Shown here one piece after another: positions 6,663 to 64,000 of a DNA stretch of 64,000 nucleotides. The DNA comes from Lepidodermella squamata (Eukaryota; Animalia; Gastrotricha), in assembly GCA_047495785.1 (NCBI GenBank), contig JBLDXI010000041.1:101815-165814 (forward strand). Reading direction: 5' to 3'. Each line of letters opens with the position of its first letter. Position 1 is the first letter of the stretch. The notes below the pieces were generated by a model, which was not told the origin of the DNA, ran no database searches, and was given only the letters and a program-made list of their open reading frames with translations. The position numbers and the translations under genes are program-made.

Positions 6663-6804
6663 CCCTTTTTCTAGCCCATTATTTTATAATTATTTTAAAT
6701 TTTGCATTTTATCAAAGTATCATATGAATAATCTAGAAATAATTATTGATGACCATCCATATAACAACTATATTTTTTATTGTTGAAAACCGAATGTGCG
6801 AAAT

Positions 6805-9921: not shown

Positions 9922-10274
9922 GAATTATTCTGTGCTAAAAAATCTCGCGCTTCCAAACAATCACATTTATGATGTCATGACTGCCATCTATGACGTTGTG
10001 TTGTTATTATTCGTGCTCAGTCAAGAATTGATCTGACATTATTGCTTTGTTGCTTCTTTGCTCAACGTATTACCATTTTTGCAGTATTTGATCAAACAAA
10101 TCGGTTACATTTTTTTTCCATTCGTCGTGGAATCCGACCCATTCTTTTTCTTATTCTTCTTCCGCTCATGTAAAGTAGCCTGATTGTTTTTAATGTTTCT
10201 TTTATAAACGATGTTTGACAGCTGTTTTTGTTATCCTTAGGTTCATTTATATTAACTCCACTGAGGCCGCTGTC

Positions 10275-20854: not shown

Positions 20855-22412
20855 ATTATCATCATCATCATCATTTTATTGTTTTCCTTCTGATTGCACC
20901 ATTTTTTTTTTAATTTTATAAAAGAATATCAGTATTTAGGAATGGATTTATAAATGGGCAAAAAGAGGATCGAGCGCAGAAGTAAGGCGACCGTACACAG
21001 CATATAAGAATGTTTATATAGGATGATGCGCGCAAGGCACGCATACATTAGATAAGGTGATTAAAATAATAATTAGTTTTATTAACTAAGGCCAGATTTG
21101 TAAGGACAGGCCATTCTTCCAATATAAATTTTTTGCACGAGTTAACAAAAAGATTTATCGAAGTAATGTTAGTGATAGAGGCAGGTAGAAGGTTCCATAA
21201 TTTGGCAGTTCTAATAGCAAAGCTAAAGCCCCTAAGGCAAAGTGAATGTTGAGGAATTGTTAATTTGTTATTAGAATGATGTCGAGTAGTAGAGAGATTA
21301 GGTTTGAGAAAGAAAGTATCGAATTCTAGAGGATGAGACATATTATTAATTATTTTGAACGCCATCGTAAGATCGCGGATTAACCATCTTTGGTTTAAGG
21401 ATAGCAATTCAAACTTAGCCAGCCTCTGAATATAGTCGAGGGGAGCCATAGGGGGAGATATAAATCTAGATGTGAAGTTTTTTAAGCACTTTTCTAAAAG
21501 ATTACGATGCTTGATTAAATAAGGCTGCCAGACGCATGAGGCATATAGTAGGTTGGGTAAGACATAAGAATTGAAAGCACGAATTAGAACTGAGTGATTT
21601 CTGGTGGAAAAAGAGTTCAGGATCAAACCACAAAGGCGACGGCTTTTAGCGTATAGTTGGTTGCAGTGAGACGAGAAGGTCAACCTGCTATCTATGATGA
21701 CGCCAAGATCGCTAGTTTCTGTCAACGAGTTGATAATGTGAGAACCGAGTAGATAGTTATGGAGTAAGTTCTTGGATCCAAGACGAAGAATGAAACATTT
21801 TTTAAGATTAACTGATAGTTGGTGGGAAGTGAAAAAAGAATAGATAGAGTTAATATCCTGCTGTATATCAGCTGGATTTGTACCCAATTTGGGGTAAATC
21901 TTAACATCGTCAGCAAATAATCGAATAATGCAAGATTTCACACAGGATGGCAAGTCATTAATGAAAAGAAGGAATAAGATTGGGCCCAGCACGCTTCCTT
22001 GGGGCACACCGGAAGTGACTGGAGACCACTGACAATGAGCATTGTTAATAACGACGCGTTGAGAACGACCAAGTAAAAAATTAGATATCCAGTCAAGTAG
22101 GCGACCAGAAATGTTGTAGTGTTCTAGTTTATTTATTAGTTTTATGTGAGAGACGGAATCGAAGGCCTTTTTAAGGTCAAAGTAAATGCAGTCAACGGGG
22201 ATGCCCCTGTCAAGTCTAGACGACCACTCGTTGATATTTTCGAGTAGCTGCATTTCGGCACTGCGGCGTGATAGGAACCCAAACTGTTCGGGAGATAGAA
22301 TATTATTTTTAGTGAGATGAGATACCAGTTCAATCCGAATACAAGACTCCATAACTTTACATGGTATACTGGTTAGGCTAATGGGCCGATAGTTTTTAAT
22401 GGGCCGATAGTT
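20855..22412 (-). mobile_element. 5'-truncated CR1-clade LINE with an intact RT domain
   Basis: ORF 21048-22442: NYRPISLTSIPCKVME, QFGF, YFDLKKAFDSVSH, SGVPQGSVLGPILFLLFINDLP, LFADD, DLGVIIDSRLTF, LWNLLP. The 3' UTR ends AATAAA followed by an (ATG)n tail at 20855-20880. Confidence 0.93.
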
Positions 22413-25400
22413 CATTAAGGTGGCTTCGGCCAAATGATACATTTATTTCGGCATCCTGGTCGGAAGCATAAGGAATTACTAACTTACAACACCCACAATT
22501 CACGATCAAGGCCGACTTTCAGAGAACATAACGCATAACGCTGTCGTGGCAGTGAGAATTGTTCGGAAGATTTTTACGCGCCGCATAAGACACGAGCTCG
22601 GCATCCTTTGATAATTTCACAGAAAAACATAAAAATACTCTCAAATTTACAAAACAAGGCTCAATTACGGTTAAGCAATATTTTTGTTTTACCAATTCAA
22701 ATTTTTGGCGCGTAGCCTTAAGTAGTAGCAGAGAGTTCTTGGCTTGGCTCTGCGATATTTATTTTCTGCGCTTGCGATTTTCTGAAAAACCGGAGTTCCT
22801 CGTTCCTCTGTGACCTACTTCTAATATACACCCATAGAAAGCAGAATAATATGAAGCCTTTGCTTAGAACAGGTGAAATGCGCAAACTTACCTCGGCGTG
22901 CCTGTCGGCGCCAATTGGATGGAAGACCGCTCAAGTGGCGAATCCGATATGAGACATGCAATCGTCATCATTGCTGATAGTCAAACCATCATCGAAAACA
23001 ATGTTCAACGATTTAGTCACCTCATGTAGTTGGAGTCATGCCCTTCTAGCCTGTCTAGCGCAGGTGTTCATCGCAAAGCCAGAGAAAAGTTCAGCGTTGG
23101 AGAGTTGGAGAGGATGATCGAGAATCGTGAGTCATCGACACGGATGTGCCCGCAGCTCCTTGCTCCTCTCCTGTTCACCGTCAATATCGGACAGCCGACT
23201 GCCCGATACTATCGACGACCCCAGCTGATTTTCTGACAGGCGGGCCGGTTGTACCGCACGCAGTGCAATTTAAGAGGGATGATCTGAAAAAAATAACTAA
23301 GCGAAAATTGATGCCAACCTCCGGTCGTTAATGTAAATGAGACGCCGATTTAACACAGTAAAAACTTGAGCTACTTGGAACATGGAGTGCTCGTCTTCAA
23401 TCTTCACAGATTTGAAGAGCGTGCAGAAATCGCCAAGTGTCTTACCTTCCGTCTTGTCGACAAAAAGGTTTTCCGTTTTCTGCAAAGCTACCTACAGCAG
23501 TCTTATAAACTGGCGACTCGTCTCTGAGCTCCTGCTACGTCATACTCAATGCAGCCAAAACACCAACCGAGCGCTCATGTGAACGGCCCGGGCTGCTGTA
23601 AGAATTCCAAGTGAAAATTTTGCAACGGCTCTGTGGCAAAGAACGTAGTTTAAACCGAATACCAAGTTGAACCCTGTGCGCCGCAATTCCGAACTTTGCA
23701 GTCGGATAGTCGGATACACTAAATCTGTTATCATCCGTCGCTCGAAGGTGAGGAGCCAGACCGACCCTCTCAGTCGGAATCTGTCCTTGTCGCACAGGCT
23801 TGCGGAAATTCCTTATCGAACGGGTGTCAAATAGGTCATAGCTCTAATATAAGTATTATATATTTTTCGTTCTGTTGTGAAATGTCCCAATAAGCTTTAT
23901 ATCTTGCGCCTTTTGAAGTTGACTTTGAGTGGCAGGTTCTAATATCTACCATCCTTTGATGATCTTGTGGAAACAGCGCCATAGATCGCAAGTTGCACGA
24001 GTTATCCAAAAGCACTCGCCTAATTCAAAATTCCAGCGGAACGAATTCGAGAAATAAGTTTTTTATAACCGTAATTTGTTTTTCTGATTTAACATTTTGT
24101 AAACGATGCTAGTAAATCGATAGTTAACATCACCACTGTGATAATCCTGGTTCTTATTATCAAACTGATGCGTAACTCAGGAATCGAGTGAGGCCAAACG
24201 CAGGTGTAAAGCGCGCGCACAAAATAGAGCGAGATGGAGCGATTTCAGCAAAATCGGTTTTTTTTTCGTTTTGCGCTTTTAATTTGCGGAATTTATATGC
24301 ACGAGTAATGTTTCTCAGCCAAGATTTTCAAAATTCTATCGAATGGTGTCAAATTAAGCGAATTTCGCGAAAATGAACGAAATTGAAAGATGGCTAAAAT
24401 TTATCGATAGATTTCACCATCGAAGCTAACTGTGAGCATCTGATTTCAAAAATCAAACCCGCAAGAATTTATTCAATAAGATTAATTTAAGGACTCATTC
24501 GCTTCCGCTGTGTAAACACGGGAGGCGATTGCGCAATGTTCGCTCCAGTTCGCTTCCGCTCCCAGCTCTGGTGTAATCGCGCCTATTGTCGAATAATATT
24601 TCGTTAAGTTCACGCAGTAAATACCGAGTAAAAACACTTACAAGCTATTTATGATATAAAAAACCCCAATAAAAACCCTGCAGCGAATGCTATTATGGGA
24701 TTATGTGAATTCGAAAGGCCGATAATGGGCTATTGCTACTACTCGGTCCTGACGGCGATTTTGAGAGACTTTGACCAATACAGCTAAGTCTTTGGTGTCA
24801 GTCATTGTCGTTGGAGCTCGTTTGTTTCGATTATGGGAATTGAATGTTGGTTTGTGTATTTCAACGCTTCATGTCCATATCCTAACGTGTTAGATACCGC
24901 CGAAATGTTCCATTCTTATCTGCTATTCTTATCATGCCTGATTCTCATTACGCATAATTTATGATAGCAAGCTTTTTTACACACAGTGAAAGCAAGAGTT
25001 ATCACCTGCTAGAATCCCTATAAACATTATCATCATTTTGTACCTTTATATTATTTGCTAAGGCTAGGCGGATTCCCTGCCTTCGTGAATGAACAGTGCT
25101 GAGTATCGCAGTTGATGCGCGAGACAATGATCTGATGTTTATGTCTCATCTAAGTAAACGTCACGGCTGTTCGGTGAGTCTTCATTACATTGAGGCGCGA
25201 AGGGTCAACAGCAGGATGGCTATTCGAGCCATGGTGCTGCCGATGAATTCTTGGGTGAAAGGCTCTGAATATAGTCCCTTGCTCACCCGGCGTGTTTACG
25301 CCGGTACCTGTTTGGTGCCTGTCCGTCTCTCGGCGCATATTTACTTGTTTCGGATCGCTGCCGATTCTGTTATCATTGCATGCCTTTTCGTAATCGTATC

Positions 25401-25897: not shown

Positions 25898-28800
25898 ATG
25901 GAATCAACTTCTCGAGGCGGCAAAAAAGCCGGCGAGCCTCGGCCGTCCCGGACGCTGCTCCTTCTCGACGCGGTGCAGTCAGCGCTCGACGAGCGCATTC
26001 GCCTGATAGCTTCGAAGAAGCCGTCTCCGCCCCTAATTGCCTCGTCATTAACCGCGACGTCGAGCAACAGCGATAGCGTTCACGAGTCGTGGCTAGCCTG
26101 TCTCCAGACCCAGGTCGAGGCAGTGTCTCAGTTGCGTCAGCGCTACAACTGGGTGCTATCGCAGCGCCAGAGCGCGTCGAACCGCGAGAACCAGCTGTTA
26201 TTCGGCAACACGGACCCGACACAACTGACAACCGGGTCGTCGGCTGGTGAGCGGCGGCGTACAATGGCATCGACATTGCAGGCGATTCGCGCCGACATGA
26301 CACGGCTGGACGCCGAGCTTTACAGCACTGAGCTCGACCTTGAATCGACAATTCTCGGCTTCCTCGAATGCGGCATTCACGGCCTGGCGGGGTTCGCGCG
26401 TCTGTCACCCGGGTCACTCTTTCGCCTGACACTGAAACACGCAGATCAGAAATGGGACAGCCGCATTGTCACTGGTAAACAGAACAAGCAGTACCTGGAA
26501 AATGACACGCATCGGTTCCGAATAGTGCTCGACTACTCACTAGGCATTAAAGCCGAGGAAGAACGATCGTTCGGGGGCGGCAGCGGGGCTAGTTCGCTGT
26601 CCGGCTCGGGGTCTTCCCTCGGATCGGGTGATTCCTTCTTTCGGTCTCTAGTACCTCGCGCCCTTCTTCCGAAGCGCCTCATTGGAACTGTCAATTTCGA
26701 CGTTTTACCCTTGATAAGCGCGCTCCCGCAACTGCTGACCATCAGCCTCAACACTTCTGGGTCGATCAAGTTACACGTCATTGTCAAATGGCTGCCGCCG
26801 CCTGCCACAGGCGCTACGAAGGCGGATCTGTTGGCGCTAGAGTTGCGGACATCTCTTGTGTTGGATCACCACCGGCCTGGAACCAGCGACTCCAGCGGTG
26901 GCAGCAGTGGGGCGGCAACTATCGGCGCGAGATCCGGTCGGCGCATGACTGGGTTGTCGCCAAAAGGCGTTAAAGGCTCTCGAACAATTCGTCAGCACAA
27001 GACGATGAGTTTGAATCCAAATGATGTTGGTGCTCTGTTGCAACAGCTAGCAGCCGAGGAAGTGACGGGCCAAGACGGTGACGCACCATCTGATCCGTCA
27101 ATTGTCTCGTCAGTTTCACCTATTCCGTCCTTGGCAGGTTCGACGTCGGTTGCGGGCAACGATCGGCTGTCTTCGTGGTCTTGGCTAAAGAACGCAGCGC
27201 ACAGCCCGCGATCTGACGATGAGCAGCTCGATGGCGCTTTGCCGCGATCCAACCCGCCCCCCGGCGCCGGTATGGACCGTATCCGTGCTCTGGCTCTGCA
27301 TGACCTCAACTCCTCGACCGAGTACCACCCGGTCGCCGATGGCAAACCGTCTTTACCCACTATCGTCGAGCCTGAGGCCGTCGCAAACGTTTTCGCTAAA
27401 GACGGCGTTGTCGTTGATAGATTTCGAAAAGAAGACATGGTTACGAGCTCAAGACTGGTTGAATCGATCGTTGCGCTTCTTGGCGAACTTCGCGGCCGCA
27501 TCTCGGACTGCAGCGAATTCGAGCAAGCATTTTCGTCGCTGCGAAACCTCCTACCACCTCATTCAACCCTTCACATTCCAGTTATGGTATGATTTACGAG
27601 AGAACTTATTGTTGTAACAATTACCGTATTACCTGAAATATGCAGAAGGCTCATGATAATTAGCAGCCTTGTAAAAAAAAACGGGTTCTAGGTTCTAGCT
27701 AATCGAACATGAATGACAGCCCACTTGGAATTTATCCGAAATTGCATAACTTTTTCATTGGTTTAAACTTCTCTCAAGTTTCTCACAGCTCTCCTGAACA
27801 TTGTAATCAACTTCATTCAGATTTAGTCGAGTTAGCGTAATTGGATAGCATATATACATAGACAGAGGTCAGGCGCAATGACTAGGGACTAGGAAATAGC
27901 CAGAGGGATAGAGCGGTTTATAGGTTTATAGTTTACAGGAAATTAATCAAGCAAACAAGAAATGTTGTCACCCGCCCCCATAAGTCGTTACAGTTATAAC
28001 TGGTACACTAGGTTATTTAGGCTAAGATTCCTTTTTACTTCTATTCCTAGCTAATAATTGAAAATTGCTTTCTGTTTTCTAGGGTAAAAGCAAGAGCTTA
28101 GCAATGCCTGGACCTCCGCTTCGATCTAGTTCAATCCGCCAGTCTATGCGAAAGCGGAGAAATGCGATGGATCTGCAGGTGAATGTAGAGCCGACCCAGC
28201 GACAGGAAAACGTACCAATAGGAGCGAATTCAGAGCAGACAGGCACCAAAAGTGACTCATCGGAGCCGAGTGGTCTCAGTTCTACAGGCTGGCCAGAACT
28301 CGACGCGGCGATATCCTCGCATTTGCGGCGTGCAGCCGAAGACCTGCGCCGCTTAGCCTCAGTTTCATTCCTCCCATTTGAATTCGGAAACTGCGCCAAA
28401 CAAAGTGTTCTCGAGTCGCTAAAAATGCATTCTTTGGCTATTCGTCAAGTCATAATTCCGCTTATTTCAACAGCCCCGCTGGACAGGCCACTGCTGGCAA
28501 CTGACATGGCAAACTCGTTGTTGAAATCAGCGGATTCGAACTCGTTATGGTCAGCTCTCGCGCGCTCCCCATCTGGCCTGGTCGCATTGCCAGCCGCTGT
28601 TTTACACACTGAATTGACGAAACGCGTTTCATCGTTCCGATCGCGCGGCCCTACAGCAACGTATGGCCCAACACCTAGCGGAGTTTCTGACAGAATCCTG
28701 TCAAAAATTACTGACTACTACGGCGAATACGTTCTTGGAACGACCATGTCTAGTGTCAACAAGATTTCCGCTGCATCCAACGTAGTGACACTGTGTGATT

Positions 28801-29429
28801 TCGCGTTTTTCGCCGGCGGTGCCGCGCCAGGCGTGATAGCGAAGCTGGAAGAGGCAAATGAAGAAATGAAGTTCTGCCACTGCCTCGAACCTGCTATTCT
28901 ACGTCGCATTTCGATGAACGACGACGCAATGTACGCCTCGACTTTACAGGCAACGCGCCGTCGACCTACACCGATGTTGGTTCATGCTTTGGCGAGCGCG
29001 GCTGGTAGTAGCGGGTCCCAAGACGTCATTGTCGCTGCCTTGAGATCAGCTTCAGTTGAGTGGTGTCGAGCGTTAGTGGGCTGCGTTAGTGCCGTATTGT
29101 TGTGGTCTTCGAATGCCGCGCCGGAAATCAAATCGGCGAAAGAGAGCGTCGAAGCTCGGATATCTCTTGTGGTCCTGCTCCAAATGTTGGCTTCGTCTAC
29201 TAGCGCTGAAATCGCCGATTCAATCGCGGTCATTCTGTCCCACGTAGCTAATGCAGACAGCGATGATAGCGTGCGAAGTGCAGCTCGACGTGCAACTGTT
29301 TCACTTGGCCAAGTAGGGCTACGCGTTCTGGGCAAGTCAGATCGTTCAACGTACGCTTTTCAAGGTCTGGCAATTACACGAACATCGATGGACACTTACA
29401 GCGAAGACGAATGTGTTGATGAAATTTAA
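25898..29429 (+). CDS. RIPOR: RIPOR/FAM65 (Rho family-interacting cell polarization regulator)-like, 2 exons, about 1011 aa
   Basis: Exon 1 25898-27586, phase-0 intron 27587-28082, exon 2 28083-29429. FAM65 N-terminal signature GLAGFARLSPG...KHADQKW...PQLLTISLNTSGSIKLHVIVKWLP; C-terminal HEAT/ARM-like DDSVRSAARRATVSLGQVG. Confidence 0.82.
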
Positions 29430-49600: not shown

Positions 49601-51137
49601 ATGCAATGTGCCTATCCACAGAAAGAAGGCATGTGAAGGGAATGAGGGAATTACGAGTGGTAATATAATCAAGTCAAAACTCAGCGCACCTTTTGTTGAT
49701 TTGCCAATGCATGCAACATAGCGAAATGGGCCATCGAGGCCAATAATTAAATAATTATAACAGCAACGACAGGTCAAATGAAGCAATCAACCTGTGTTGT
49801 ATGCATTAAAGGCAGCCGACATCACGCAATTTTTTGTTACTAACTGTCACAAGATCGCTTTTTATTTGAGCGCGGCGCGAAGAGAGCGATAAAGCGATAA
49901 AGCGCGCTGGCACGTCACCACCACCCTTGCAGTCGGTACGCTTTTAATAGTAGAGCGCTTTTTGCGTCTGACCGCTAATAAAATGTCCGCTTGGCGGCCA
50001 GTAGTCCAAGGCCGGCATTACATGTGCACTAGGTCAGCAATAAACGCATTATTGAAACATGCATTAATAATACAAAGTAAAGGTAAAATACTGCTAAATC
50101 AACTGAATCGAAATGTGTGTATTTTGTCGAGTGTGCTGCTTAAAATCGGCTGCTTTTTGTTTACGATTTCCGGGCCTCAATAAACAATTCCCGCTCGCGC
50201 TTCAATAGTTTAATCACAAGGACTTCGGTAGCTGATGAGGTTTTTGAAAATTCATGTTTTGCTTTTTTCTTTGACAATAATTCAAGTTTCCCCCGTAGTG
50301 CAAGTTTTCAGTAAAAAAAACGAACTGAATAGCTTGCGGCAGAAGCAATTTCAGGTTATATAGTTTTATATGCAACTTACTCTTGTAGGTATGATTTGTT
50401 AGAGGAGAGGGTCAGAAAAGGGATCCTTATATTAGCGTATTTTTTCGACACACAGCTCAAAATATAGCTACATTTCCGGTTCGTTTTTATGGGCGTAAAA
50501 CGATCCTACTCCAGCGCTGCAGCAAAAAACTCTTCCGGGAATTATTCAAATGTAGCTGGATGGACATTCAATATAGGAAAACATCCTAACGTGATTATGG
50601 GCACTATTGTCTATCGATAGCTGTGAGCTTCTGTCAGACCCAATGTCGCCTTGGAAAATGCCAAGTGCGCTCTGGTTTTTTCCTCCAAAATAGAGATGTT
50701 GCCGCAAAATTTGCATTAAATACCCCATGGACACTGCTGGTTGTTGCTTTTAAACAAAAAATGTTACGCGAAACGATATTCAGTATAAATGTGAATCAGA
50801 TCGAATTACTGAGCTTGACGGAATTCTCCGGCTATATTCTACGCCGCTAGTGTGATTGACATTACAGGGGATCACATGAACCGGTTTTCCGATGGATGTT
50901 AGCGTAAGTATAACCGCTGGCACCAAATAATGATTGAGGCAAAATCATGTGTACTCCTTGAATTGATAATTAGCGAGTTTTTGATAAACGTTTTCCCAGC
51001 AAAAACCTTGAATTGCATTGAAATTTATTGCAGTAAAATTAAGAGATGATATGATCACCGTATTAAGCTCATGTGAAATCAACCATTACCAACCGGCCAG
51101 AATAAGAATCTGTTATTCAATAAGCAATAAATAATAA

Positions 51138-54100
51138 TTAAGAAGACGTGCAACTGCTACAGCCGCATCTATCGACAAATCGCAATTTTTCGAGCCGCTC
51201 ATAGACGAAGCCGTCGCCAGTGCATGTCATAGGAATAGCAATCTCAGGGCCCATCACCGGGTTGCAGCATCGGCAAGACGTGCCATCGATCAGATGGGAA
51301 TCAGCAGCGCCAAATGCTGCTCGTTTTTGCGTTGACCAAAACGGGAATGAAACTGATGCACAGGCGCCCGTGCATTCGGATACGCGCACAGGGAACTTTG
51401 ACGTACAGTTGCAATTTTCGGCCGAGACGATAGTGGTAAACTTGGAACTCATGGAGCACTCGTCATTCTTAGGCTCCTCCGCGTCACTAACGACTATATC
51501 TTCATCCTCTACCTCCCGAAGGACTTGTTTAGATACCCTAGGTTCGGGCGGGACATATCCGCAGTAAGAAGTATACAGTTCTGAAGTGAAAGGACGGAGC
51601 GGGTCTTCAATCTCCAGCTCAACAGTGAGCTCACTAATTTCGAGTGAAGAAAGCTCGAATTGCCCGCATTGATTCTATTCAGGAGAAAATAAACCTCAAA
51701 ATATCGCAAGCATTTGAAAATGAATCTTACCAAAGTTGCTATAACGAACTCATCGGTATCATCGCCAGACAGCTTCGACTTCTTAGCGAAAACGACAGCT
51801 CTTTCAAGGTTTCCAAATTTCAACAACTCAGCTGAGGATAAGAGCACCGGTTTTGTGAAAGAGAGGGTGAATTTATAATTCTTTCCACACAATGAACTGC
51901 GCCAGTCCATGAGGTCAGTTTGATTAATACCATTTGAAACTATCATATCGCCAGGTAACAACGAAGATATGGTGAAAGGTTGTTGACGGTTGCAAATAGC
52001 CGAGGTTGGCGGTGTAGTTCCTCGATCCCTAACCACCTTAGGCTTTGTCGTCGTGCGACCAGAGACAGCTGGGCGAGCCGTAGTTGTAGTGACTGAAAAA
52101 TATATTCAGATTGGTCAATTACGCCAGTTATGGAAAGGCTAATCCGTGGCAATTACCGATCCTCTCCTTCGTGCAGCAGCTCAAGCCGACGCGAGAGCGA
52201 ACGGGCTTCGAGTCGTCCTTCGGTGTAAACCTGATGACAACACTGTCGGCGGTGATAGCGTCGCGGCCAGTAAACTTGACTGGCAAATCCCTCGGATCGA
52301 AGGACTAGATTATACACAAACAGAGTAGCAATGCAATGGAGCGAGAGAATATGGCAAACATACCCTGGACACACTCTTCTTGTCTGCGCGGAAAGTCACA
52401 TCCACTCGTTCGACGTTTCTCACGTCAGGAAGATCGAAGCTGAGCACTGGGGTTTCTCGGGGCAGCTCCACAGTAACCTCAGGTTGCTTGTCACGTGGGG
52501 ATGACTCCCAAGGACGGCGAGCCGAAGGTCTGAGATTTTCGCTCTCCTCCTTGTTGCTCGATACACGGAGACTGTCTTGAGGAATGAATGTGGTGTCATC
52601 GAGGCTCGACGATTTGGCGCAGATCTTCTTAGGAGCGGCCGTCGTCTTCGGTGTCTTTGAAGTTGTGGAAGAGCCACGTTCGCGGGGAACGCGGGGGCTG
52701 CTAGGCTTTCCGCTCACTCCCGGCTTTGCAGTAGTCACGGTTGTCTTGCGCACAGTAGTAGTCTTTGGTGCAACCTTGAAGCAACCGAATACAGACAACT
52801 GAGCCTGAACAGGTTCCTTGGGATCTTTCTTGTTGAACACGACAGTGATCGAGTCAGCATTAACCTCCTTCGGGAACTTGGCCGGCAATTCTGAAGGCTT
52901 GTATACCTGAGGAAAAACAAGAAAGAAGTCATAATTTTGCAAACGCTGCGTTGATGATGATACCTTAGGCTCCAATACGGGTCTGGTGTAAACAACGACA
53001 GATTCGACGTTGGTATATTGCGGCAAATCGAAACCAGCGAGAGGCGTGCGAGCGGGGAATCGAATGGTCGTTTCCGGTTTCTTGTCTTCCGGAGAGCTCT
53101 TCCATGGCTTCTCAGACTTTGGCCTCAGGTTCTCCTTGTCCTCGGGCCTGCTTGAAGTTGTAATGGAACTGGAAGGCAAGTAGATGGGTTGTGACATTCC
53201 TTCCTTCTTTTCACAAGGCTTCGGCGTGGTTCCAGGAGTTGTTGATCCCTTGGGCGCGTTCGATGCTCCAGTTTGAGCTTTCGGGGTTGTCGTTTCTGTG
53301 ATTAGTGACAGCGTCATGTGAAAATTAAATCCGCCACATAACGAGTCGATACTTACTTGGTGCCTCCTTGAAGCAGCCACGAACCGCCAACTTTGCTTCC
53401 ACAGGCTTGGAATCATCGATACGAGTGAAGGTCAGGCCGATGGCATCTGCAACCACGTCGGTCGGGAAGTTGACGGGAAGCTCCGAAGGCTTGTATTCCT
53501 AAGATTGACTATTATTAAGCAAGCCAGTCGAAATAGGTAATCTACCCTCACCTTTTCAACGTTCTTGTTCGAAGGCGATACAGTCAAGCGGACAGCCTTA
53601 ACGTTCTTAAGGTCTGGCAGGTCGAAGCCAGCAAGCTCAGAACGGCGCGGGAATTGTACTCCAACGTTGGGCAAGCGATCGGTAGGTGACGATTTCCAAG
53701 GTTGCTTGCTGTTAGGGCGAAGATTTTCCTTGTCCTCAGGCCTGCTTGAGGTGCGCAGGCTTGATGTCGGCAAAAAGGCTGGTTGGTCCATGCCTTCGCG
53801 CTTCGTGCAAGGCTTGCGGGTGCTTGTCGTTCTGCGATCCCTAACCACCTTAGGCTTTGTCGTCGTGCGACCAGAGACAGCTGGGCGAGCCGTAGTTGTA
53901 GTGACTGAAAAATATATTCAGATTGGTCAATTACGCCAGTTATGGAAAGGCTAATCCGTGGCAATTACCGATCCTCTCCTTCGTGCAGCAGCTCAAGCCG
54001 ACGCGAGAGCGAACGGGCTTCGAGTCGTCCTTCGGTGTAAACCTGATGACAACACTGTCGGCGGTGATAGCGTCGCGGCCAGTAAACTTGACTGGCAAAT

Positions 54101-57100
54101 CCCTCGGATCGAAGGACTAGATTATACACAAACAGAGTAGCAATGCAATGGAGCGAGAGAATATGGCAAACATACCCTGGACACACTCTTCTTGTCTGCG
54201 CGGAAAGTCACATCCACTCGTTCGACGTTTCTCACGTCAGGAAGATCGAAGCTGAGCACTGGGGTTTCTCGGGGCAGCTCCACAGTAACCTCAGGTTGCT
54301 TGTCACGTGGGGATGACTCCCAAGGACGGCGAGCCGAAGGTCTGAGATTTTCGCTCTCCTCCTTGTTGCTCGATACACGGAGACTGTCTTGAGGAATGAA
54401 TGTGGTGTCATCGAGGCTCGACGATTTGGCGCAGATCTTCTTAGGAGCGGCCGTCGTCTTCGGTGTCTTTGAAGTTGTGGAAGAGCCACGTTCGCGGGGA
54501 ACGCGGGGGCTGCTAGGCTTTCCGCTCACTCCCGGCTTTGCAGTAGTCACGGTTGTCTTGCGCACAGTAGTAGTCTTTGGTGCAACCTTGAAGCAACCGA
54601 ATACAGACAACTGAGCCTGAACAGGTTCCTTGGGATCTTTCTTGTTGAACACGACAGTGATCGAGTCAGCATTAACCTCCTTCGGGAACTTGGCCGGCAA
54701 TTCTGAAGGCTTGTATACCTGAGGAAAAACAAGAAAGAAGTCATAATTTTGCAAACGCTGCGTTGATGATGATACCTTAGGCTCCAATACGGGTCTGGTG
54801 TAAACAACGACAGATTCGACGTTGGTATATTGCGGCAAATCGAAACCAGCGAGAGGCGTGCGAGCGGGGAATCGAATGGTCGTTTCCGGTTTCTTGTCTT
54901 CCGGAGAGCTCTTCCATGGCTTCTCAGACTTTGGCCTCAGGTTCTCCTTGTCCTCGGGCCTGCTTGAAGTTGTAATGGAACTGGAAGGCAAGTAGATGGG
55001 TTGTGACATTCCTTCCTTCTTTTCACAAGGCTTCGGCGTGGTTCCAGGAGTTGTTGATCCCTTGGGCGCGTTCGATGCTCCAGTTTGAGCTTTCGGGGTT
55101 GTCGTTTCTGTGATTAGTGACAGCGTCATGTGAAAATTAAATCCGCCACATAACGAGTCGATACTTACTTGGTGCCTCCTTGAAGCAGCCACGAACCGCC
55201 AACTTTGCTTCCACAGGCTTGGAATCATCGATACGAGTGAAGGTCAGGCCGATGGCATCTGCAACCACGTCGGTCGGGAAGTTGACGGGAAGCTCCGAAG
55301 GCTTGTATTCCTAAGATTGACTATTATTAAGCAAGCCAGTCGAAATAGGTAATCTACCCTCACCTTTTCAACGTTCTTGTTCGAAGGCGATACAGTCAAG
55401 CGGACAGCCTTAACGTTCTTAAGGTCTGGCAGGTCGAAGCCAGCAAGCTCAGAACGGCGCGGGAATTGTACTCCAACGTTGGGCAAGCGATCGGTAGGTG
55501 ACGATTTCCAAGGTTGCTTGCTGTTAGGGCGAAGATTTTCCTTGTCCTCAGGCCTGCTTGAGGTGCGCAGGCTTGATGTCGGCAAAAAGGCTGGTTGGTC
55601 CATGCCTTCGCGCTTCGTGCAAGGCTTGCGGGTGCTTGTCGTTCTGCGATCCCTAACCACCTTAGGCTTTGTCGTCGTGCGACCAGAGACAGCTGGGCGA
55701 GCCGTAGTTGTAGTGACTGAAAAATATATTCAGATTGGTCAATTACGCCAGTTATGGAAAGGCTAATCCGTGGCAATTACCGATCCTCTCCTTCGTGCAG
55801 CAGCTCAAGCCGACGCGAGAGCGAACGGGCTTCGAGTCGTCCTTCGGTGTAAACCTGATGACAACACTGTCGGCGGTGATAGCGTCGCGGCCAGTAAACT
55901 TGACTGGCAAATCCCTCGGATCGAAGGACTAGATTATACACAAACAGAGTAGCAATGCAATGGAGCGAGAGAATATGGCAAACATACCCTGGACACACTC
56001 TTCTTGTCTGCGCGGAAAGTCACATCCACTCGTTCGACGTTTCTCACGTCAGGAAGATCGAAGCTGAGCACTGGGGTTTCTCGGGGCAGCTCCACAGTAA
56101 CCTCAGGTTGCTTGTCACGTGGGGATGACTCCCAAGGACGGCGAGCCGAAGGTCTGAGATTTTCGCTCTCCTCCTTGTTGCTCGATACACGGAGACTGTC
56201 TTGAGGAATGAATGTGGTGTCATCGAGGCTCGACGATTTGGCGCAGATCTTCTTAGGAGCGGCCGTCGTCTTCGGTGTCTTTGAAGTTGTGGAAGAGCCA
56301 CGTTCGCGGGGAACGCGGGGGCTGCTAGGCTTTCCGCTCACTCCCGGCTTTGCAGTAGTCACGGTTGTCTTGCGCACAGTAGTAGTCTTTGGTGCAACCT
56401 TGAAGCAACCGAATACAGACAACTGAGCCTGAACAGGTTCCTTGGGATCTTTCTTGTTGAACACGACAGTGATCGAGTCAGCATTAACCTCCTTCGGGAA
56501 CTTGGCCGGCAATTCTGAAGGCTTGTATACCTGAGGAAAAACAAGAAAGAAGTCATAATTTTGCAAACGCTGCGTTGATGATGATACCTTAGGCTCCAAT
56601 ACGGGTCTGGTGTAAACAACGACAGATTCGACGTTGGTATATTGCGGCAAATCGAAACCAGCGAGAGGCGTGCGAGCGGGGAATCGAATGGTCGTTTCCG
56701 GTTTCTTGTCTTCCGGAGAGCTCTTCCATGGCTTCTCAGACTTTGGCCTCAGGTTCTCCTTGTCCTCGGGCCTGCTTGAAGTTGTAATGGAACTGGAAGG
56801 CAAGTAGATGGGTTGTGACATTCCTTCCTTCTTTTCACAAGGCTTCGGCGTGGTTCCAGGAGTTGTTGATCCCTTGGGCGCGTTCGATGCTCCAGTTTGA
56901 GCTTTCGGGGTTGTCGTTTCTGTGATTAGTGACAGCGTCATGTGAAAATTAAATCCGCCACATAACGAGTCGATACTTACTTGGTGCCTCCTTGAAGCAG
57001 CCACGAACCGCCAACTTTGCTTCCACAGGCTTGGAATCATCGATACGAGTGAAGGTCAGGCCGATGGCATCTGCAACCACGTCGGTCGGGAAGTTGACGG

Positions 57101-60100
57101 GAAGCTCCGAAGGCTTGTATTCCTAAGATTGACTATTATTAAGCAAGCCAGTCGAAATAGGTAATCTACCCTCACCTTTTCAACGTTCTTGTTCGAAGGC
57201 GATACAGTCAAGCGGACAGCCTTAACGTTCTTAAGGTCTGGCAGGTCGAAGCCAGCAAGCTCAGAACGGCGCGGGAATTGTACTCCAACGTTGGGCAAGC
57301 GATCGGTAGGTGACGATTTCCAAGGTTGCTTGCTGTTAGGGCGAAGATTTTCCTTGTCCTCAGGCCTGCTTGAGGTGCGCAGGCTTGATGTCGGCAAAAA
57401 GGCTGGTTGGTCCATGCCTTCGCGCTTCGTGCAAGGCTTGCGGGTGCTTGTCGTTCTGCGATCCCTAACCACCTTAGGCTTTGTCGTCGTGCGACCAGAG
57501 ACAGCTGGGCGAGCCGTAGTTGTAGTGACTGAAAAATATATTCAGATTGGTCAATTACGCCAGTTATGGAAAGGCTAATCCGTGGCAATTACCGATCCTC
57601 TCCTTCGTGCAGCAGCTCAAGCCGACGCGAGAGCGAACGGGCTTCGAGTCGTCCTTCGGTGTAAACCTGATGACAACACTGTCGGCGGTGATAGCGTCGC
57701 GGCCAGTAAACTTGACTGGCAAATCCCTCGGATCGAAGGACTAGATTATACACAAACAGAGTAGCAATGCAATGGAGCGAGAGAATATGGCAAACATACC
57801 CTGGACACACTCTTCTTGTCTGCGCGGAAAGTCACATCCACTCGTTCGACGTTTCTCACGTCAGGAAGATCGAAGCTGAGCACTGGGGTTTCTCGGGGCA
57901 GCTCCACAGTAACCTCAGGTTGCTTGTCACGTGGGGATGACTCCCAAGGACGGCGAGCCGAAGGTCTGAGATTTTCGCTCTCCTCCTTGTTGCTCGATAC
58001 ACGGAGACTGTCTTGAGGAATGAATGTGGTGTCATCGAGGCTCGACGATTTGGCGCAGATCTTCTTAGGAGCGGCCGTCGTCTTCGGTGTCTTTGAAGTT
58101 GTGGAAGAGCCACGTTCGCGGGGAACGCGGGGGCTGCTAGGCTTTCCGCTCACTCCCGGCTTTGCAGTAGTCACGGTTGTCTTGCGCACAGTAGTAGTCT
58201 TTGGTGCAACCTTGAAGCAACCGAATACAGACAACTGAGCCTGAACAGGTTCCTTGGGATCTTTCTTGTTGAACACGACAGTGATCGAGTCAGCATTAAC
58301 CTCCTTCGGGAACTTGGCCGGCAATTCTGAAGGCTTGTATACCTGAGGAAAAACAAGAAAGAAGTCATAATTTTGCAAACGCTGCGTTGATGATGATACC
58401 TTAGGCTCCAATACGGGTCTGGTGTAAACAACGACAGATTCGACGTTGGTATATTGCGGCAAATCGAAACCAGCGAGAGGCGTGCGAGCGGGGAATCGAA
58501 TGGTCGTTTCCGGTTTCTTGTCTTCCGGAGAGCTCTTCCATGGCTTCTCAGACTTTGGCCTCAGGTTCTCCTTGTCCTCGGGCCTGCTTGAAGTTGTAAT
58601 GGAACTGGAAGGCAAGTAGATGGGTTGTGACATTCCTTCCTTCTTTTCACAAGGCTTCGGCGTGGTTCCAGGAGTTGTTGATCCCTTGGGCGCGTTCGAT
58701 GCTCCAGTTTGAGCTTTCGGGGTTGTCGTTTCTGTGATTAGTGACAGCGTCATGTGAAAATTAAATCCGCCACATAACGAGTCGATACTTACTTGGTGCC
58801 TCCTTGAAGCAGCCACGAACCGCCAACTTTGCTTCCACAGGCTTGGAATCATCGATACGAGTGAAGGTCAGGCCGATGGCATCTGCAACCACGTCGGTCG
58901 GGAAGTTGACGGGAAGCTCCGAAGGCTTGTATTCCTAAGATTGACTATTATTAAGCAAGCCAGTCGAAATAGGTAATCTACCCTCACCTTTTCAACGTTC
59001 TTGTTCGAAGGCGATACAGTCAAGCGGACAGCCTTAACGTTCTTAAGGTCTGGCAGGTCGAAGCCAGCAAGCTCAGAACGGCGCGGGAATTGTACTCCAA
59101 CGTTGGGCAAGCGATCGGTAGGTGACGATTTCCAAGGTTGCTTGCTGTTAGGGCGAAGATTTTCCTTGTCCTCAGGCCTGCTTGAGGTGCGCAGGCTTGA
59201 TGTCGGCAAAAAGGCTGGTTGGTCCATGCCTTCGCGCTTCGTGCAAGGCTTGCGGGTGCTTGTCGTTCTGCGATCCCTAACCACCTTAGGCTTTGTCGTC
59301 GTGCGACCAGAGACAGCTGGGCGAGCCGTAGTTGTAGTGACTGAAAAATATATTCAGATTGGTCAATTACGCCAGTTATGGAAAGGCTAATCCGTGGCAA
59401 TTACCGATCCTCTCCTTCGTGCAGCAGCTCAAGCCGACGCGAGAGCGAACGGGCTTCGAGTCGTCCTTCGGTGTAAACCTGATGACAACACTGTCGGCGG
59501 TGATAGCGTCGCGGCCAGTAAACTTGACTGGCAAATCCCTCGGATCGAAGGACTAGATTATACACAAACAGAGTAGCAATGCAATGGAGCGAGAGAATAT
59601 GGCAAACATACCCTGGACACACTCTTCTTGTCTGCGCGGAAAGTCACATCCACTCGTTCGACGTTTCTCACGTCAGGAAGATCGAAGCTGAGCACTGGGG
59701 TTTCTCGGGGCAGCTCCACAGTAACCTCAGGTTGCTTGTCACGTGGGGATGACTCCCAAGGACGGCGAGCCGAAGGTCTGAGATTTTCGCTCTCCTCCTT
59801 GTTGCTCGATACACGGAGACTGTCTTGAGGAATGAATGTGGTGTCATCGAGGCTCGACGATTTGGCGCAGATCTTCTTAGGAGCGGCCGTCGTCTTCGGT
59901 GTCTTTGAAGTTGTGGAAGAGCCACGTTCGCGGGGAACGCGGGGGCTGCTAGGCTTTCCGCTCACTCCCGGCTTTGCAGTAGTCACGGTTGTCTTGCGCA
60001 CAGTAGTAGTCTTTGGTGCAACCTTGAAGCAACCGAATACAGACAACTGAGCCTGAACAGGTTCCTTGGGATCTTTCTTGTTGAACACGACAGTGATCGA

Positions 60101-63100
60101 GTCAGCATTAACCTCCTTCGGGAACTTGGCCGGCAATTCTGAAGGCTTGTATACCTGAGGAAAAACAAGAAAGAAGTCATAATTTTGCAAACGCTGCGTT
60201 GATGATGATACCTTAGGCTCCAATACGGGTCTGGTGTAAACAACGACAGATTCGACGTTGGTATATTGCGGCAAATCGAAACCAGCGAGAGGCGTGCGAG
60301 CGGGGAATCGAATGGTCGTTTCCGGTTTCTTGTCTTCCGGAGAGCTCTTCCATGGCTTCTCAGACTTTGGCCTCAGGTTCTCCTTGTCCTCGGGCCTGCT
60401 TGAAGTTGTAATGGAACTGGAAGGCAAGTAGATGGGTTGTGACATTCCTTCCTTCTTTTCACAAGGCTTCGGCGTGGTTCCAGGAGTTGTTGATCCCTTG
60501 GGCGCGTTCGATGCTCCAGTTTGAGCTTTCGGGGTTGTCGTTTCTGTGATTAGTGACAGCGTCATGTGAAAATTAAATCCGCCACATAACGAGTCGATAC
60601 TTACTTGGTGCCTCCTTGAAGCAGCCACGAACCGCCAACTTTGCTTCCACAGGCTTGGAATCATCGATACGAGTGAAGGTCAGGCCGATGGCATCTGCAA
60701 CCACGTCGGTCGGGAAGTTGACGGGAAGCTCCGAAGGCTTGTATTCCTAAGATTGACTATTATTAAGCAAGCCAGTCGAAATAGGTAATCTACCCTCACC
60801 TTTTCAACGTTCTTGTTCGAAGGCGATACAGTCAAGCGGACAGCCTTAACGTTCTTAAGGTCTGGCAGGTCGAAGCCAGCAAGCTCAGAACGGCGCGGGA
60901 ATTGTACTCCAACGTTGGGCAAGCGATCGGTAGGTGACGATTTCCAAGGTTGCTTGCTGTTAGGGCGAAGATTTTCCTTGTCCTCAGGCCTGCTTGAGGT
61001 GCGCAGGCTTGATGTCGGCAAAAAGGCTGGTTGGTCCATGCCTTCGCGCTTCGTGCAAGGCTTGCGGGTGCTTGTCGTTCTGCGATCCCTAACCACCTTA
61101 GGCTTTGTCGTCGTGCGACCAGAGACAGCTGGGCGAGCCGTAGTTGTAGTGACTGAAAAATATATTCAGATTGGTCAATTACGCCAGTTATGGAAAGGCT
61201 AATCCGTGGCAATTACCGATCCTCTCCTTCGTGCAGCAGCTCAAGCCGACGCGAGAGCGAACGGGCTTCGAGTCGTCCTTCGGTGTAAACCTGATGACAA
61301 CACTGTCGGCGGTGATAGCGTCGCGGCCAGTAAACTTGACTGGCAAATCCCTCGGATCGAAGGACTAGATTATACACAAACAGAGTAGCAATGCAATGGA
61401 GCGAGAGAATATGGCAAACATACCCTGGACACACTCTTCTTGTCTGCGCGGAAAGTCACATCCACTCGTTCGACGTTTCTCACGTCAGGAAGATCGAAGC
61501 TGAGCACTGGGGTTTCTCGGGGCAGCTCCACAGTAACCTCAGGTTGCTTGTCACGTGGGGATGACTCCCAAGGACGGCGAGCCGAAGGTCTGAGATTTTC
61601 GCTCTCCTCCTTGTTGCTCGATACACGGAGACTGTCTTGAGGAATGAATGTGGTGTCATCGAGGCTCGACGATTTGGCGCAGATCTTCTTAGGAGCGGCC
61701 GTCGTCTTCGGTGTCTTTGAAGTTGTGGAAGAGCCACGTTCGCGGGGAACGCGGGGGCTGCTAGGCTTTCCGCTCACTCCCGGCTTTGCAGTAGTCACGG
61801 TTGTCTTGCGCACAGTAGTAGTCTTTGGTGCAACCTTGAAGCAACCGAATACAGACAACTGAGCCTGAACAGGTTCCTTGGGATCTTTCTTGTTGAACAC
61901 GACAGTGATCGAGTCAGCATTAACCTCCTTCGGGAACTTGGCCGGCAATTCTGAAGGCTTGTATACCTGAGGAAAAACAAGAAAGAAGTCATAATTTTGC
62001 AAACGCTGCGTTGATGATGATACCTTAGGCTCCAATACGGGTCTGGTGTAAACAACGACAGATTCGACGTTGGTATATTGCGGCAAATCGAAACCAGCGA
62101 GAGGCGTGCGAGCGGGGAATCGAATGGTCGTTTCCGGTTTCTTGTCTTCCGGAGAGCTCTTCCATGGCTTCTCAGACTTTGGCCTCAGGTTCTCCTTGTC
62201 CTCGGGCCTGCTTGAAGTTGTAATGGAACTGGAAGGCAAGTAGATGGGTTGTGACATTCCTTCCTTCTTTTCACAAGGCTTCGGCGTGGTTCCAGGAGTT
62301 GTTGATCCCTTGGGCGCGTTCGATGCTCCAGTTTGAGCTTTCGGGGTTGTCGTTTCTGTGATTAGTGACAGCGTCATGTGAAAATTAAATCCGCCACATA
62401 ACGAGTCGATACTTACTTGGTGCCTCCTTGAAGCAGCCACGAACCGCCAACTTTGCTTCCACAGGCTTGGAATCATCGATACGAGTGAAGGTCAGGCCGA
62501 TGGCATCTGCAACCACGTCGGTCGGGAAGTTGACGGGAAGCTCCGAAGGCTTGTATTCCTAAGATTGACTATTATTAAGCAAGCCAGTCGAAATAGGTAA
62601 TCTACCCTCACCTTTTCAACGTTCTTGTTCGAAGGCGATACAGTCAAGCGGACAGCCTTAACGTTCTTAAGGTCTGGCAGGTCGAAGCCAGCAAGCTCAG
62701 AACGGCGCGGGAATTGTACTCCAACGTTGGGCAAGCGATCGGTAGGTGACGATTTCCAAGGTTGCTTGCTGTTAGGGCGAAGATTTTCCTTGTCCTCAGG
62801 CCTGCTTGAGGTGCGCAGGCTTGATGTCGGCAAAAAGGCTGGTTGGTCCATGCCTTCGCGCTTCGTGCAAGGCTTGCGGGTGCTTGTCGTTCTGCGATCC
62901 CTAACCACCTTAGGCTTTGTCGTCGTGCGACCAGAGACAGCTGGGCGAGCCGTAGTTGTAGTGACTGAAAAATATATTCAGATTGGTCAATTACGCCAGT
63001 TATGGAAAGGCTAATCCGTGGCAATTACCGATCCTCTCCTTCGTGCAGCAGCTCAAGCCGACGCGAGAGCGAACGGGCTTCGAGTCGTCCTTCGGTGTAA

Positions 63101-64000
63101 ACCTGATGACAACACTGTCGGCGGTGATAGCGTCGCGGCCAGTAAACTTGACTGGCAAATCCCTCGGATCGAAGGACTAGATTATACACAAACAGAGTAG
63201 CAATGCAATGGAGCGAGAGAATATGGCAAACATACCCTGGACACACTCTTCTTGTCTGCGCGGAAAGTCACATCCACTCGTTCGACGTTTCTCACGTCAG
63301 GAAGATCGAAGCTGAGCACTGGGGTTTCTCGGGGCAGCTCCACAGTAACCTCAGGTTGCTTGTCACGTGGGGATGACTCCCAAGGACGGCGAGCCGAAGG
63401 TCTGAGATTTTCGCTCTCCTCCTTGTTGCTCGATACACGGAGACTGTCTTGAGGAATGAATGTGGTGTCATCGAGGCTCGACGATTTGGCGCAGATCTTC
63501 TTAGGAGCGGCCGTCGTCTTCGGTGTCTTTGAAGTTGTGGAAGAGCCACGTTCGCGGGGAACGCGGGGGCTGCTAGGCTTTCCGCTCACTCCCGGCTTTG
63601 CAGTAGTCACGGTTGTCTTGCGCACAGTAGTAGTCTTTGGTGCAACCTTGAAGCAACCGAATACAGACAACTGAGCCTGAACAGGTTCCTTGGGATCTTT
63701 CTTGTTGAACACGACAGTGATCGAGTCAGCATTAACCTCCTTCGGGAACTTGGCCGGCAATTCTGAAGGCTTGTATACCTGAGGAAAAACAAGAAAGAAG
63801 TCATAATTTTGCAAACGCTGCGTTGATGATGATACCTTAGGCTCCAATACGGGTCTGGTGTAAACAACGACAGATTCGACGTTGGTATATTGCGGCAAAT
63901 CGAAACCAGCGAGAGGCGTGCGAGCGGGGAATCGAATGGTCGTTTCCGGTTTCTTGTCTTCCGGAGAGCTCTTCCATGGCTTCTCAGACTTTGGCCTCAG
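51138..64000 (-). CDS. 3' part of a giant mucin/adhesive-like protein: tandem discoidin (F5/8C)-like modules with Thr/Lys/Pro-rich linkers and a C-terminal cystine knot; 5' end outside the window
   Basis: Per 1812-bp unit: exons of 353, 142, 332, 543 and 148 nt (1518 nt, 506 aa) and introns of 53, 61, 57, 59 and 64 nt, all GT-AG and frame-consistent. Unique terminal exons 52092-51731 and 51674-51138 end in a CTCK pattern (C..CNC..ECTGAC..SCRCCNP..C..CGC..C). Confidence 0.85.
52023..64000. repeat. Intragenic tandem array, 1812-bp period, at least 6.6 copies, runs off the window
   Basis: The unit starts at CGATCCCTAACCACC at 52023, 53835, 55647, 57459, 59271, 61083 and 62895. All six-frame ORFs recur with identical translations every 1812 bp. 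Confidence 0.99.

Follow-up and report, generated by a model that had tools for sequence, protein, structure and literature searches.

A giant gene of Lepidodermella squamata encodes a tandem array of divergent, predicted discoidin-type modules ending in a cystine knot

Introduction

The temporary glue of flatworms contains a surface-binding component named ap2 (Mlig-ap2, Mile-ap2, Tmed-ap2), which consists of N-terminal TIL/VWD/C8/LDL domains, two blocks of large identical Thr-rich repeats "of unknown function", and C-terminal TIL/TSP-1 domains (PMC6410801, PMC8621496, PMC6745481, PMC9229212). F5_F8 (discoidin-type) domains typify the gel-forming-mucin-like proteins of lophotrochozoans as well as hemolectin, in which F5_F8_type_C stands together with VWD-C8-TIL and a knot at the C-terminus (Lang et al., 2016, PMC4948705). 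Here, we describe a locus within 64,000 nucleotides (nt) of the gastrotrich Lepidodermella squamata (assembly GCA_047495785.1, contig JBLDXI010000041.1, positions 101,815 to 165,814); this whole stretch is called the window, and all coordinates refer to it. Its minus strand carries, from 64000 down to 51138, the 3' part of one very large gene, of which at least 3,620 amino acids (aa) lie within the window. The encoded protein is an array of modules, predicted to fold as shortened discoidin domains and joined by basic Thr-rich linkers, that runs into a cystine knot.

Architecture and transcription of the gene

Between 52023 and 64000 the minus strand consists of 6.61 copies of an 1812-bp unit without a single mismatch (self-identity at lag 1812). 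The array continues past the window end at 64000, and the 5' part of the gene is located outside the window. The Tandem Repeats Finder program reported no repeat over the array because its longest period was limited to 500. Three-frame translation reveals five GT..AG introns per unit, of 53, 61, 57, 59, and 64 nt (294 nt in total); the unit minus its introns is 1518 nt or 506 codons, which reproduces the period and the three paralogous modules in 506 aa claimed by the original prediction. Splicing from the window end to 51138 yields one uninterrupted frame of 3,620 codons with one TAA as its end (51140-51138), exceeding the predicted minimum of 3300 aa. The introns within modules A, B, C, and D are all of phase 0 and at a homologous position, and the two between-module introns are of phase 1; this symmetric exon set is what would be expected for a unit grown by duplication. 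The GC content of the giant gene is 54% in exons and 38% in introns. It was also observed that the region 52001-64000 has 51-52% GC and a steadily positive GC skew, as compared with mostly 37-47% GC elsewhere in the window (1-52000). An exact look-up of a 368-aa open reading frame (ORF) of the window, intended to get beyond its end, found no record.

The transcription of the gene was assessed by comparing contigs from four public runs with window positions 50900-53800. The X1 and X3 contigs are spliced, and together they show all six intron types, the five of the repeat and the one of module D, at the predicted bases (CT..AC on the plus strand). Every junction deduced from the sequence is thus backed by RNA contigs. 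The X1 and X3 contigs end at 51028 and 51013, at or just downstream of the AATAAA at 51029-51024. At its end (51028), the X1 contig carries 19 loose letters that look like a SMART-type primer for cDNA amplification, which would mark X1 as a cDNA library.

Modules, linkers, and the predicted fold

The order within each unit is linker, module A, linker, module B, linker, module C. From Cys to Cys the modules measure 128 (A), 126 (B), and 130 aa (C), with identities of 56% between A and B, 42% between A and C, and 39% between B and C. The linkers of 32, 53, and 37 aa make up 24% of the unit, the folded modules approximately 76%. They contain 31-35% Ser+Thr and 8-19% Pro, carry a net charge of +4 to +12, and include the linker string quoted in the original prediction. 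The whole unit has an isoelectric point (pI) of 9.8-9.9 and a net charge of approximately +33 per 506 aa, and it holds no N-x-S/T sequon. After the last unit there follow a further linker copy, a module D, a 32-aa acidic spacer, and a 106-aa Cys-rich end. The window part of the protein contains at least 20 modules. Module D, which had been predicted as a fourth divergent module before the C-terminus, is only 19-21% identical to A-C; it retains the terminal Cys and the position of the intron, together with the motifs L-P, W-x-S-S, and N-[LV]-E-x-V-V. The hhalign comparison of the family profile with the D1 half was in register (pairwise E 0.0035).

When every exon and eight relatives were scanned with Pfam, the module was assigned to no family, which agrees with the original prediction, where the module family was not recognised as a described one; nor did the repeat exons contain CysD or any other Pfam family. 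PF00754 has no match in the window modules, and the relatives match neither PF00754 nor PF22633. Judged by its sequence, the module is not a member of the Pfam F5/8 type C families. The motifs at the origin of the discoidin-like call, the N-terminal C..GM...I..SS and the central Trp, are present. A profile of 14 modules compared with the PDB gave one convincing match, CBM32 of Clostridium perfringens (4a42, E 0.005), and the Atlas feature search of the module led to small F5_F8-type families.

The structure of the module was modelled with AlphaFold2 (AF2). A full-length module of a relative (P0005:280-422) was modelled from a 40-row alignment with pLDDT 96.5 and pTM 0.89, and module B of the window, with its intron read through, with pLDDT 89.7 and pTM 0.82. 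The intron inside module B is in frame and stop-free, and a naive ORF therefore reads through it; the model of module B includes 19 non-native, intron-encoded residues (86-104), and its sole poor stretch, approximately residues 84-100, coincides with them. Foldseek searches against the PDB returned neuropilin b1, the C domains of coagulation factors V and VIII (FV/FVIII), DDR2, CBM32, and IFT25 with E 1e-5 and TM 0.6-0.7. Over the PDB, Swiss-Prot AFDB, AFDB clusters, and Atlas, almost only discoidin, F5/8 type C, and CBM32 domains were found, together with the related IFT25, NR2C2AP, PITH, and DOC. The VIA-align superpositions on neuropilin b1, FVIII C2, DDR, and CBM32 reached Z 14-15.3 with a root-mean-square deviation of 2.5-2.8 Å over approximately 126 of the approximately 127 native residues, at an identity of 11-18% to the superposed discoidin, F5/8 type C, and CBM32 domains. 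They run from the first to the last Cys (model 1-2 to 146 versus FVIII C2 2172-2326 and neuropilin b1 273-424). C1 and C142 are the only invariant columns among the 14 full modules. In the model, this terminal pair occupies the positions of the two Cys whose disulfide ties the termini of discoidin domains. Each module is thus modelled as a beta-sandwich of the discoidin type (F5/8 type C, galactose-binding-like), compact and divergent, with a Cys closing it at either end. The discoidin-like call was right for the fold and the position of the terminal disulfide (AF2, Foldseek, VIA-align Z ~15). When compared to the longer relatives, the window modules do without one strand and a short helix, exactly at the intron position.

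The C-terminal cystine knot

The last 106 aa (51141-51458) contain the motifs C-x-G-x-C, C-x-C-C-x-P, and C-x-C-x-x-C of a C-terminal cystine knot (CTCK). The Pfam family DAN (PF03045) matches with E 8.3e-7 and 29.4 bits versus a cut-off of 22, and the Atlas feature search of the C-terminus returned only DAN/Cys_knot clusters (0.91, 183 shared features). A weak phmmer match (E 0.08) aligns the C-terminus Cys for Cys with the CTCK of VWF, and Norrin was aligned as well. The predicted CTCK end is therefore borne out, with DAN above its threshold and a cysteine spacing that equals that of VWF. In VWF, the C-x-C cysteines and the last Cys form inter-chain bonds. The knot of the window protein has equivalents of the VWF C-x-C-C cysteines and of the final Cys, which makes tail-to-tail dimerisation a reasonable expectation and the knot a likely dimeriser. 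The claim that the protein is polymer-forming thus comes down to this likely C-terminal dimeriser with VWF-type cysteines. No VWD, C8, or TIL domain was found by Pfam in 51138-52092, where only the acidic spacer and the knot follow the last module.

Relatives and their genomic context

A HMMER search with module B against 1.84 billion representative proteins found 29 relatives at E ≤ 1e-3, none below 1e-30, and most of them are exon-sized fragments from raw assemblies. A profile search of a 5.8-billion word-indexed collection added 4 further fragments only. The named relatives are hypothetical proteins of the bryozoan Bugula neritina, an uncharacterised protein of the nemertean Tubulanus polymorphus, and Mytilus proteins, one of them auto-named "mucin-17-like". 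All of them are named "hypothetical", "uncharacterized", or "mucin-17-like", and no characterised orthologue was found. On the sequence evidence, the module defines a spiralian-restricted domain subfamily absent from Pfam. Pfam matches of two relatives (P0034 and P0038) to APT, Mec-4_10_cyt, and Gp_dh_C, with E down to 1e-28, contained no individually significant stretch and were rejected as summation artefacts of near-identical repeats.

With a local hidden Markov model, 18 modules were counted in Bugula (183-aa period), 21 in Mytilus californianus (209-aa period), and 8 in Tubulanus. In all three arrays the copies within a species are near-identical and separated by Thr/Pro linkers; homogenised arrays of module plus linker are therefore the rule in the family. 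The fragments from closer relatives fall into A-, B-, and C-types, with P0002 78% identical to A when A and B share 56%, and the three-module unit is therefore older than the present array.

The surroundings of the arrays were considered as well. At one locus (L002), ORFs on the same strand, upstream of the module/PTS (Pro/Thr/Ser) repeats, score as VWD, C8, TIL, TIL, VWD, VWD, C8, TIL, and LDLa. The Bugula locus (L005; VXIV02001558.1, 104627-133747) has on one strand a TIL+LDLa model, then the module array, and then TIL with many TSP_1. Its five adjacent gene models, three of them array pieces including EB796_009846-009848, are separated by gaps of 50-250 nt and are probably one ap2-like giant gene split by annotation. 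The flanks of the Tubulanus locus show weak VWC only.

Proposed function and alternative explanations

We consider it probable, though well short of certain even when the structural claims are counted in, that the window protein is a secreted, disulfide-linked, bead-on-string glycoprotein that forms a cohesive sticky network, i.e., an adhesive mucus or glue of the spiralian ap2/mucin-like class. It is almost certainly secreted; as for its role, we infer glue, mucus, or matrix. In the proposed mechanism, the knot would join the chains into tail-to-tail disulfide dimers, and an N-terminus outside the window, if it resembles that of the relatives (VWD-C8-TIL, LDLa), might join them head-to-head into multimers. 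The linkers would carry mucin-type O-glycans, and the many lectin-like beads, together with the high positive charge, could bind glycans or negatively charged surfaces in a multivalent, partly electrostatic manner. The secreted material would then form the cohesive, sticky network, with the discoidin-like beads filling the part played by CysD in vertebrate gel-forming mucins.

The relation to ap2 was pursued by eye on the printed sequence of Mlig-ap2 (PMC6410801, supplementary information). Its RepA and RepB each seem to consist of a Cys-bounded module of ~135-150 aa and a basic Thr-rich linker, with a closing motif K-x-P-V ... L-x-V-x-x-C like that of the window module family. As a separate observation, the same sequence has at its end a CTCK-like knot (C-x-G-x-C ... 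C-x-C ... C), which the paper leaves out of its domain description. No ap2 sequence is among the 29 HMMER relatives of module B, and motif searches in the supplements of three flatworm papers gave no match. The link to ap2 may serve as a lead rather than a finding. An extended form of the adhesive reading can be built on it, which we advance tentatively and regard as doubtful. It assumes that the module is the missing fold of the ap2-type "repeats of unknown function", and that the surface adhesives of bryozoans, molluscs, nemerteans, and flatworms would all be arrays of stripped-down discoidin domains on basic O-glycosylated linkers. A protein having both lectin beads and their glycan ligands could form a reversible, self-assembled network. 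In this view, the window gene would be a new paralogue of that class that ends in a CTCK, and concerted evolution would maintain the identity of its 1812-bp unit even across two labelled organisms whose unique flanks are 1.5% apart.

Several observations weigh against the adhesive reading. The window part of the protein shows neither a signal peptide nor an N-terminal assembly domain, the 5' end of the gene being located beyond 64000. The best Pfam match of any module is PF22633 (F5_F8_type_C_2) with E 0.062 and 14.4 bits versus a cut-off of 27.8, for module C1 only. No ligand-binding residues are assignable in the modules; the motif [DN]-L-R-P ... P-W-x-S aligns with the structural N-L-R-D-G ... 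W of CBM32 and is therefore probably core and not a binding site. The linkers, only 32-53 aa long and 24% of the unit, do not amount to a classical mucin brush. Unlike in ap2 proteins, no TIL/TSP-1 was found by Pfam in the C-terminal exons. The Mlig-ap2 repeats, inspected by eye, have no Trp and no P-W-x-S motif, and since they lack the near-invariant Trp, their homology to the window module is unproven.

It is possible, though in our judgement rather unlikely, that the same molecule is not adhesive and forms a gel with a structural or protective function (locomotory or epidermal mucus, gut lining, egg-capsule or cocoon matrix) in which the beads act as cross-linkers. A CTCK with inferred VWD assemblies is the design of gel-forming mucins and VWF, F5_F8 domains are general in lophotrochozoan mucin-like proteins (PMC4948705), a Mytilus relative is auto-named "mucin-17-like", and nothing within the window links the gene to an adhesive organ. 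However, the short, strongly basic linkers and the pI of 9.8 are unlike classical acidic, heavily glycosylated mucins and like the Lys/Arg/Thr-rich flatworm glues, and the contexts in Bugula and at L002 are ap2-like.

A further debatable issue is the perfection of the array. The gene could be real with its copy number and 100% identity produced by polishing or by collapse/expansion during assembly, and the absence of any mismatch over 12 kb, introns included, is indeed unusual. This was weighed on X2, which is unspliced DNA. Its word depth is 74 in the unique 3' part and ~850 in the repeat (~1020 with two variants summed), i.e., a repeat/flank ratio of ~11-14x, and an X2 contig links 53800 back to 52013 with 24 letters between, which corresponds to the 1812-bp period of a unit closed on itself. 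Because of this depth and this circular join the array is real, with ~11-14 units in the X2 sample, an approximate count since summed word depth does not equal true copy number. Only one path, of 1143 nt, leads through the unit in the short-read contigs. On the other hand, X2 contains bubbles at 53269-53391 and 52028-52099, at which two variants exist and ~40% of the copies differ, and none of the 6.6 in-window copies carries them. Independent contigs with that single path at 11.5x flank depth and the circular 1812-bp join, and the equally homogeneous arrays of the Bugula and Mytilus relatives, make it unlikely that assembly accounts even for part of the perfection; the homogeneity of the array is not just an artefact of the window assembly. 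At 53365 and 53408, contigs of all four runs depart from the window sequence, and these loose ends suggest that the gene or a paralogue has another A2-type exon elsewhere that is more divergent. The runs labelled as a second organism (organism B) deviate from the window in the unique 3' part, where 16 of 1062 positions (1.5%) are different, but at none of 1143 nt of the repeat unit with its introns. Their coding changes are 3 synonymous and 0 non-synonymous in the exon of D2 and the knot, and 2 synonymous and 6 non-synonymous in the D1 exon.

An immune or clotting lectin of hemolectin/hemocytin type, aggregating cells or microbes, would combine VWD-C8-TIL, F5_F8_type_C, and a knot, as hemolectin does (PMC4948705), and the modelled fold of the window modules agrees with it. 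We hold this to be very unlikely, as hemolectin has two canonical F5_F8 domains between VWD blocks (3+2), whereas in the window at least 20 divergent modules, below the Pfam F5_F8 thresholds, run straight into the knot. Membership in the 3+2 architecture is ruled out, no VWD-C8-TIL units following the last module. The term "polyprotein" in the original prediction found no support: a single R-x-[KR]-R, which every unit carries in the linker preceding module A, could let a furin-type convertase cut at R-D-R-R and free 506-aa three-module lectins, but this is highly improbable, as the sister-species orthologue of module A (P0002) reads R-E-R-G, the site is lost before module D, such motifs arise readily in Arg/Lys-rich linkers, and a CTCK would be pointless on a chopped chain, and we rejected it on the lack of conservation of R-D-R-R.

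Features of the locus and neighbouring genes

The features of the giant gene are collected in Table 1.

Table 1. Annotated features of the 3' part of the giant gene. Exon and intron coordinates are those of the last full unit; the other copies are located at + k x 1812.
Feature	Coordinates	Strand	Evidence
Tandem array of identical 1812-bp units (A, B, C and three linkers, 506 aa)	52023..64000	-	Lag-1812 identity, DNA run X2
Exon: basic Thr-rich linker C to A and first half of module A (A1)	53552..53904	-	Frame; RNA-contig junctions 53497/53551 (cut +1), 52092/52157
Intron A1/A2, 53 nt, GT..AG, phase 0, homologous position in module	53499..53551	-	X1 spliced contig skips 53 nt
Exon A2: module A second half including closing Cys	53357..53498	-	X3 contig record 19 joins next exon
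Intron A2/B1, 61 nt, GT..AG, phase 1	53296..53356	-	X3 contig skips from 53295 to 53357
Exon: linker A to B and first half of module B (B1)	52964..53295	-	Spliced frame
Intron B1/B2, 57 nt, GT..AG, phase 0	52907..52963	-	X3 contig skips 57 nt
Exon: module B second half, 53-aa linker B to C, and first half of module C (C1)	52364..52906	-	Spliced frame
Intron C1/C2, 59 nt, GT..AG, phase 0	52305..52363	-	X1 and X3 contigs skip from 52304 to 52364
Exon C2: module C second half	52157..52304	-	Spliced frame
Intron C2/next unit, 64 nt, GT..AG, phase 1	52093..52156	-	X1 and X3 contigs skip from 52092 to 52157
Exon: last linker (repeat-identical down to 52023) and first half of degenerate module D	51731..52092	-	Spliced frame, hhalign
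Intron D1/D2, 56 nt, GT..AG, phase 0, same position as introns inside A, B, C	51675..51730	-	X1 and X3 contigs skip from 51674 to 51731
Module D second half	51555..51674	-	Translation
Acidic 32-aa spacer, pI ~4.2, module D to knot	51459..51554	-	Composition
C-terminal CTCK-type domain, 12 Cys; stop 51140-51138	51141..51458	-	Pfam DAN, VWF/Norrin alignment, Atlas
3' untranslated region, AATAAA at 51029-51024	51013..51137	-	RNA contigs end at 51013 and 51028

The neighbouring genes at 9178-9921, 10215-11813, 13816-14862, and 25898-29429 appear largely intron-less, as single ORFs of 247-564 aa; in the giant gene an intron occurs every 150-540 nt. The neighbours include a tetraspanin-like ORF and a UBX-domain protein (homologues carry PF00789 and PF21021). 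Two long ORFs, at 6780-7667 (+) and 21048-22442 (-), resemble, by eye from their translations, reverse transcriptases of non-LTR (long terminal repeat) retroelements.

Comparison with described systems

In the field of temporary bioadhesion, ap2-like giant repeat proteins are known as surface-binding glue, and their repeats have remained "of unknown function". The locus and its relatives give a confidently modelled fold, a minimal discoidin domain, for one giant glue-type repeat family. The definition of the subfamily would also improve the annotation of many giant genes now called "hypothetical" or "mucin-17-like", and the locus is a clean case of extreme homogenisation of a 1.8-kb, intron-containing coding repeat.

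Like ap2, the window protein is giant and has a core array of large, near-identical, Thr-rich basic repeats, here 6.61 identical 506-aa units, with probable O-glycosylation in both. The likeness extends to the relatives, in which the array stands after VWD/C8/TIL/LDLa at L002 and, in Bugula, after TIL/LDLa and before TIL/TSP-1. In contrast to ap2, the window protein goes from modules to knot directly, without a TIL/TSP-1 block. The units differ in size as well, with 506 aa and three differentiated modules in the window versus 255/221 aa in Mlig-ap2 and 330/230 aa in Tmed-ap2.

With the gel-forming mucins and VWF (MUC2, MUC5AC, MUC5B, VWF) the protein shares the C-terminal knot with the VWF cysteine pattern, including C-x-C-C, small Cys-bounded globular domains among Ser/Thr/Pro linkers (the role of CysD), and, in its relatives, VWD-C8-TIL. 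However, its bead is predicted to have the discoidin fold and not that of CysD, and its linkers are short and basic, not long PTS brushes. Hemolectin/hemocytin and the lophotrochozoan F5_F8 mucin-like proteins resemble it in discoidin-fold domains combined with a C-terminal knot and VWD-C8-TIL, the latter on the window side seen in relatives. They have few canonical F5_F8_type_C domains between VWD blocks, whereas the window protein has at least 20 divergent, shortened modules with PTS-like linkers. The data on F5_F8 domains (Lang et al., 2016) give this domain vocabulary a precedent, and the module is therefore better seen as a new divergent subfamily than as a new kind of protein. The novelty once claimed for the module family accordingly holds for a divergent subfamily outside Pfam, and not for the combination of F5_F8, VWD, and CTCK, which is already in PMC4948705.

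The canonical discoidin domains (neuropilin b1, FV/FVIII C1-C2, DDR1/2 DS, lactadherin, CBM32) have the beta-sandwich predicted here, with the terminal Cys pair in the same positions, but measure 150-160 aa versus 126-130 aa in the window. The sea-star footprint protein Sfp1, to which the ap2 literature also refers, is likewise a large secreted adhesive protein, with discoidin, lectin, VWD, C8, and EGF-type domains. Sfp1 is cleaved into subunits and assembled as a mosaic from canonical domains that occur singly, in contrast to the repetition of one homogenised module in the window protein, to which it showed no relationship in sequence. When compared to all these systems, three features are new. 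The first is a shortened, divergent discoidin subfamily unrecognised by curated models. The second is the direct run of the beads into the knot, without the VWD blocks of hemolectin or the TIL/TSP-1 blocks of ap2, and the third is the amplification of the module to at least 20 beads alternating with short, basic, PTS-like linkers.

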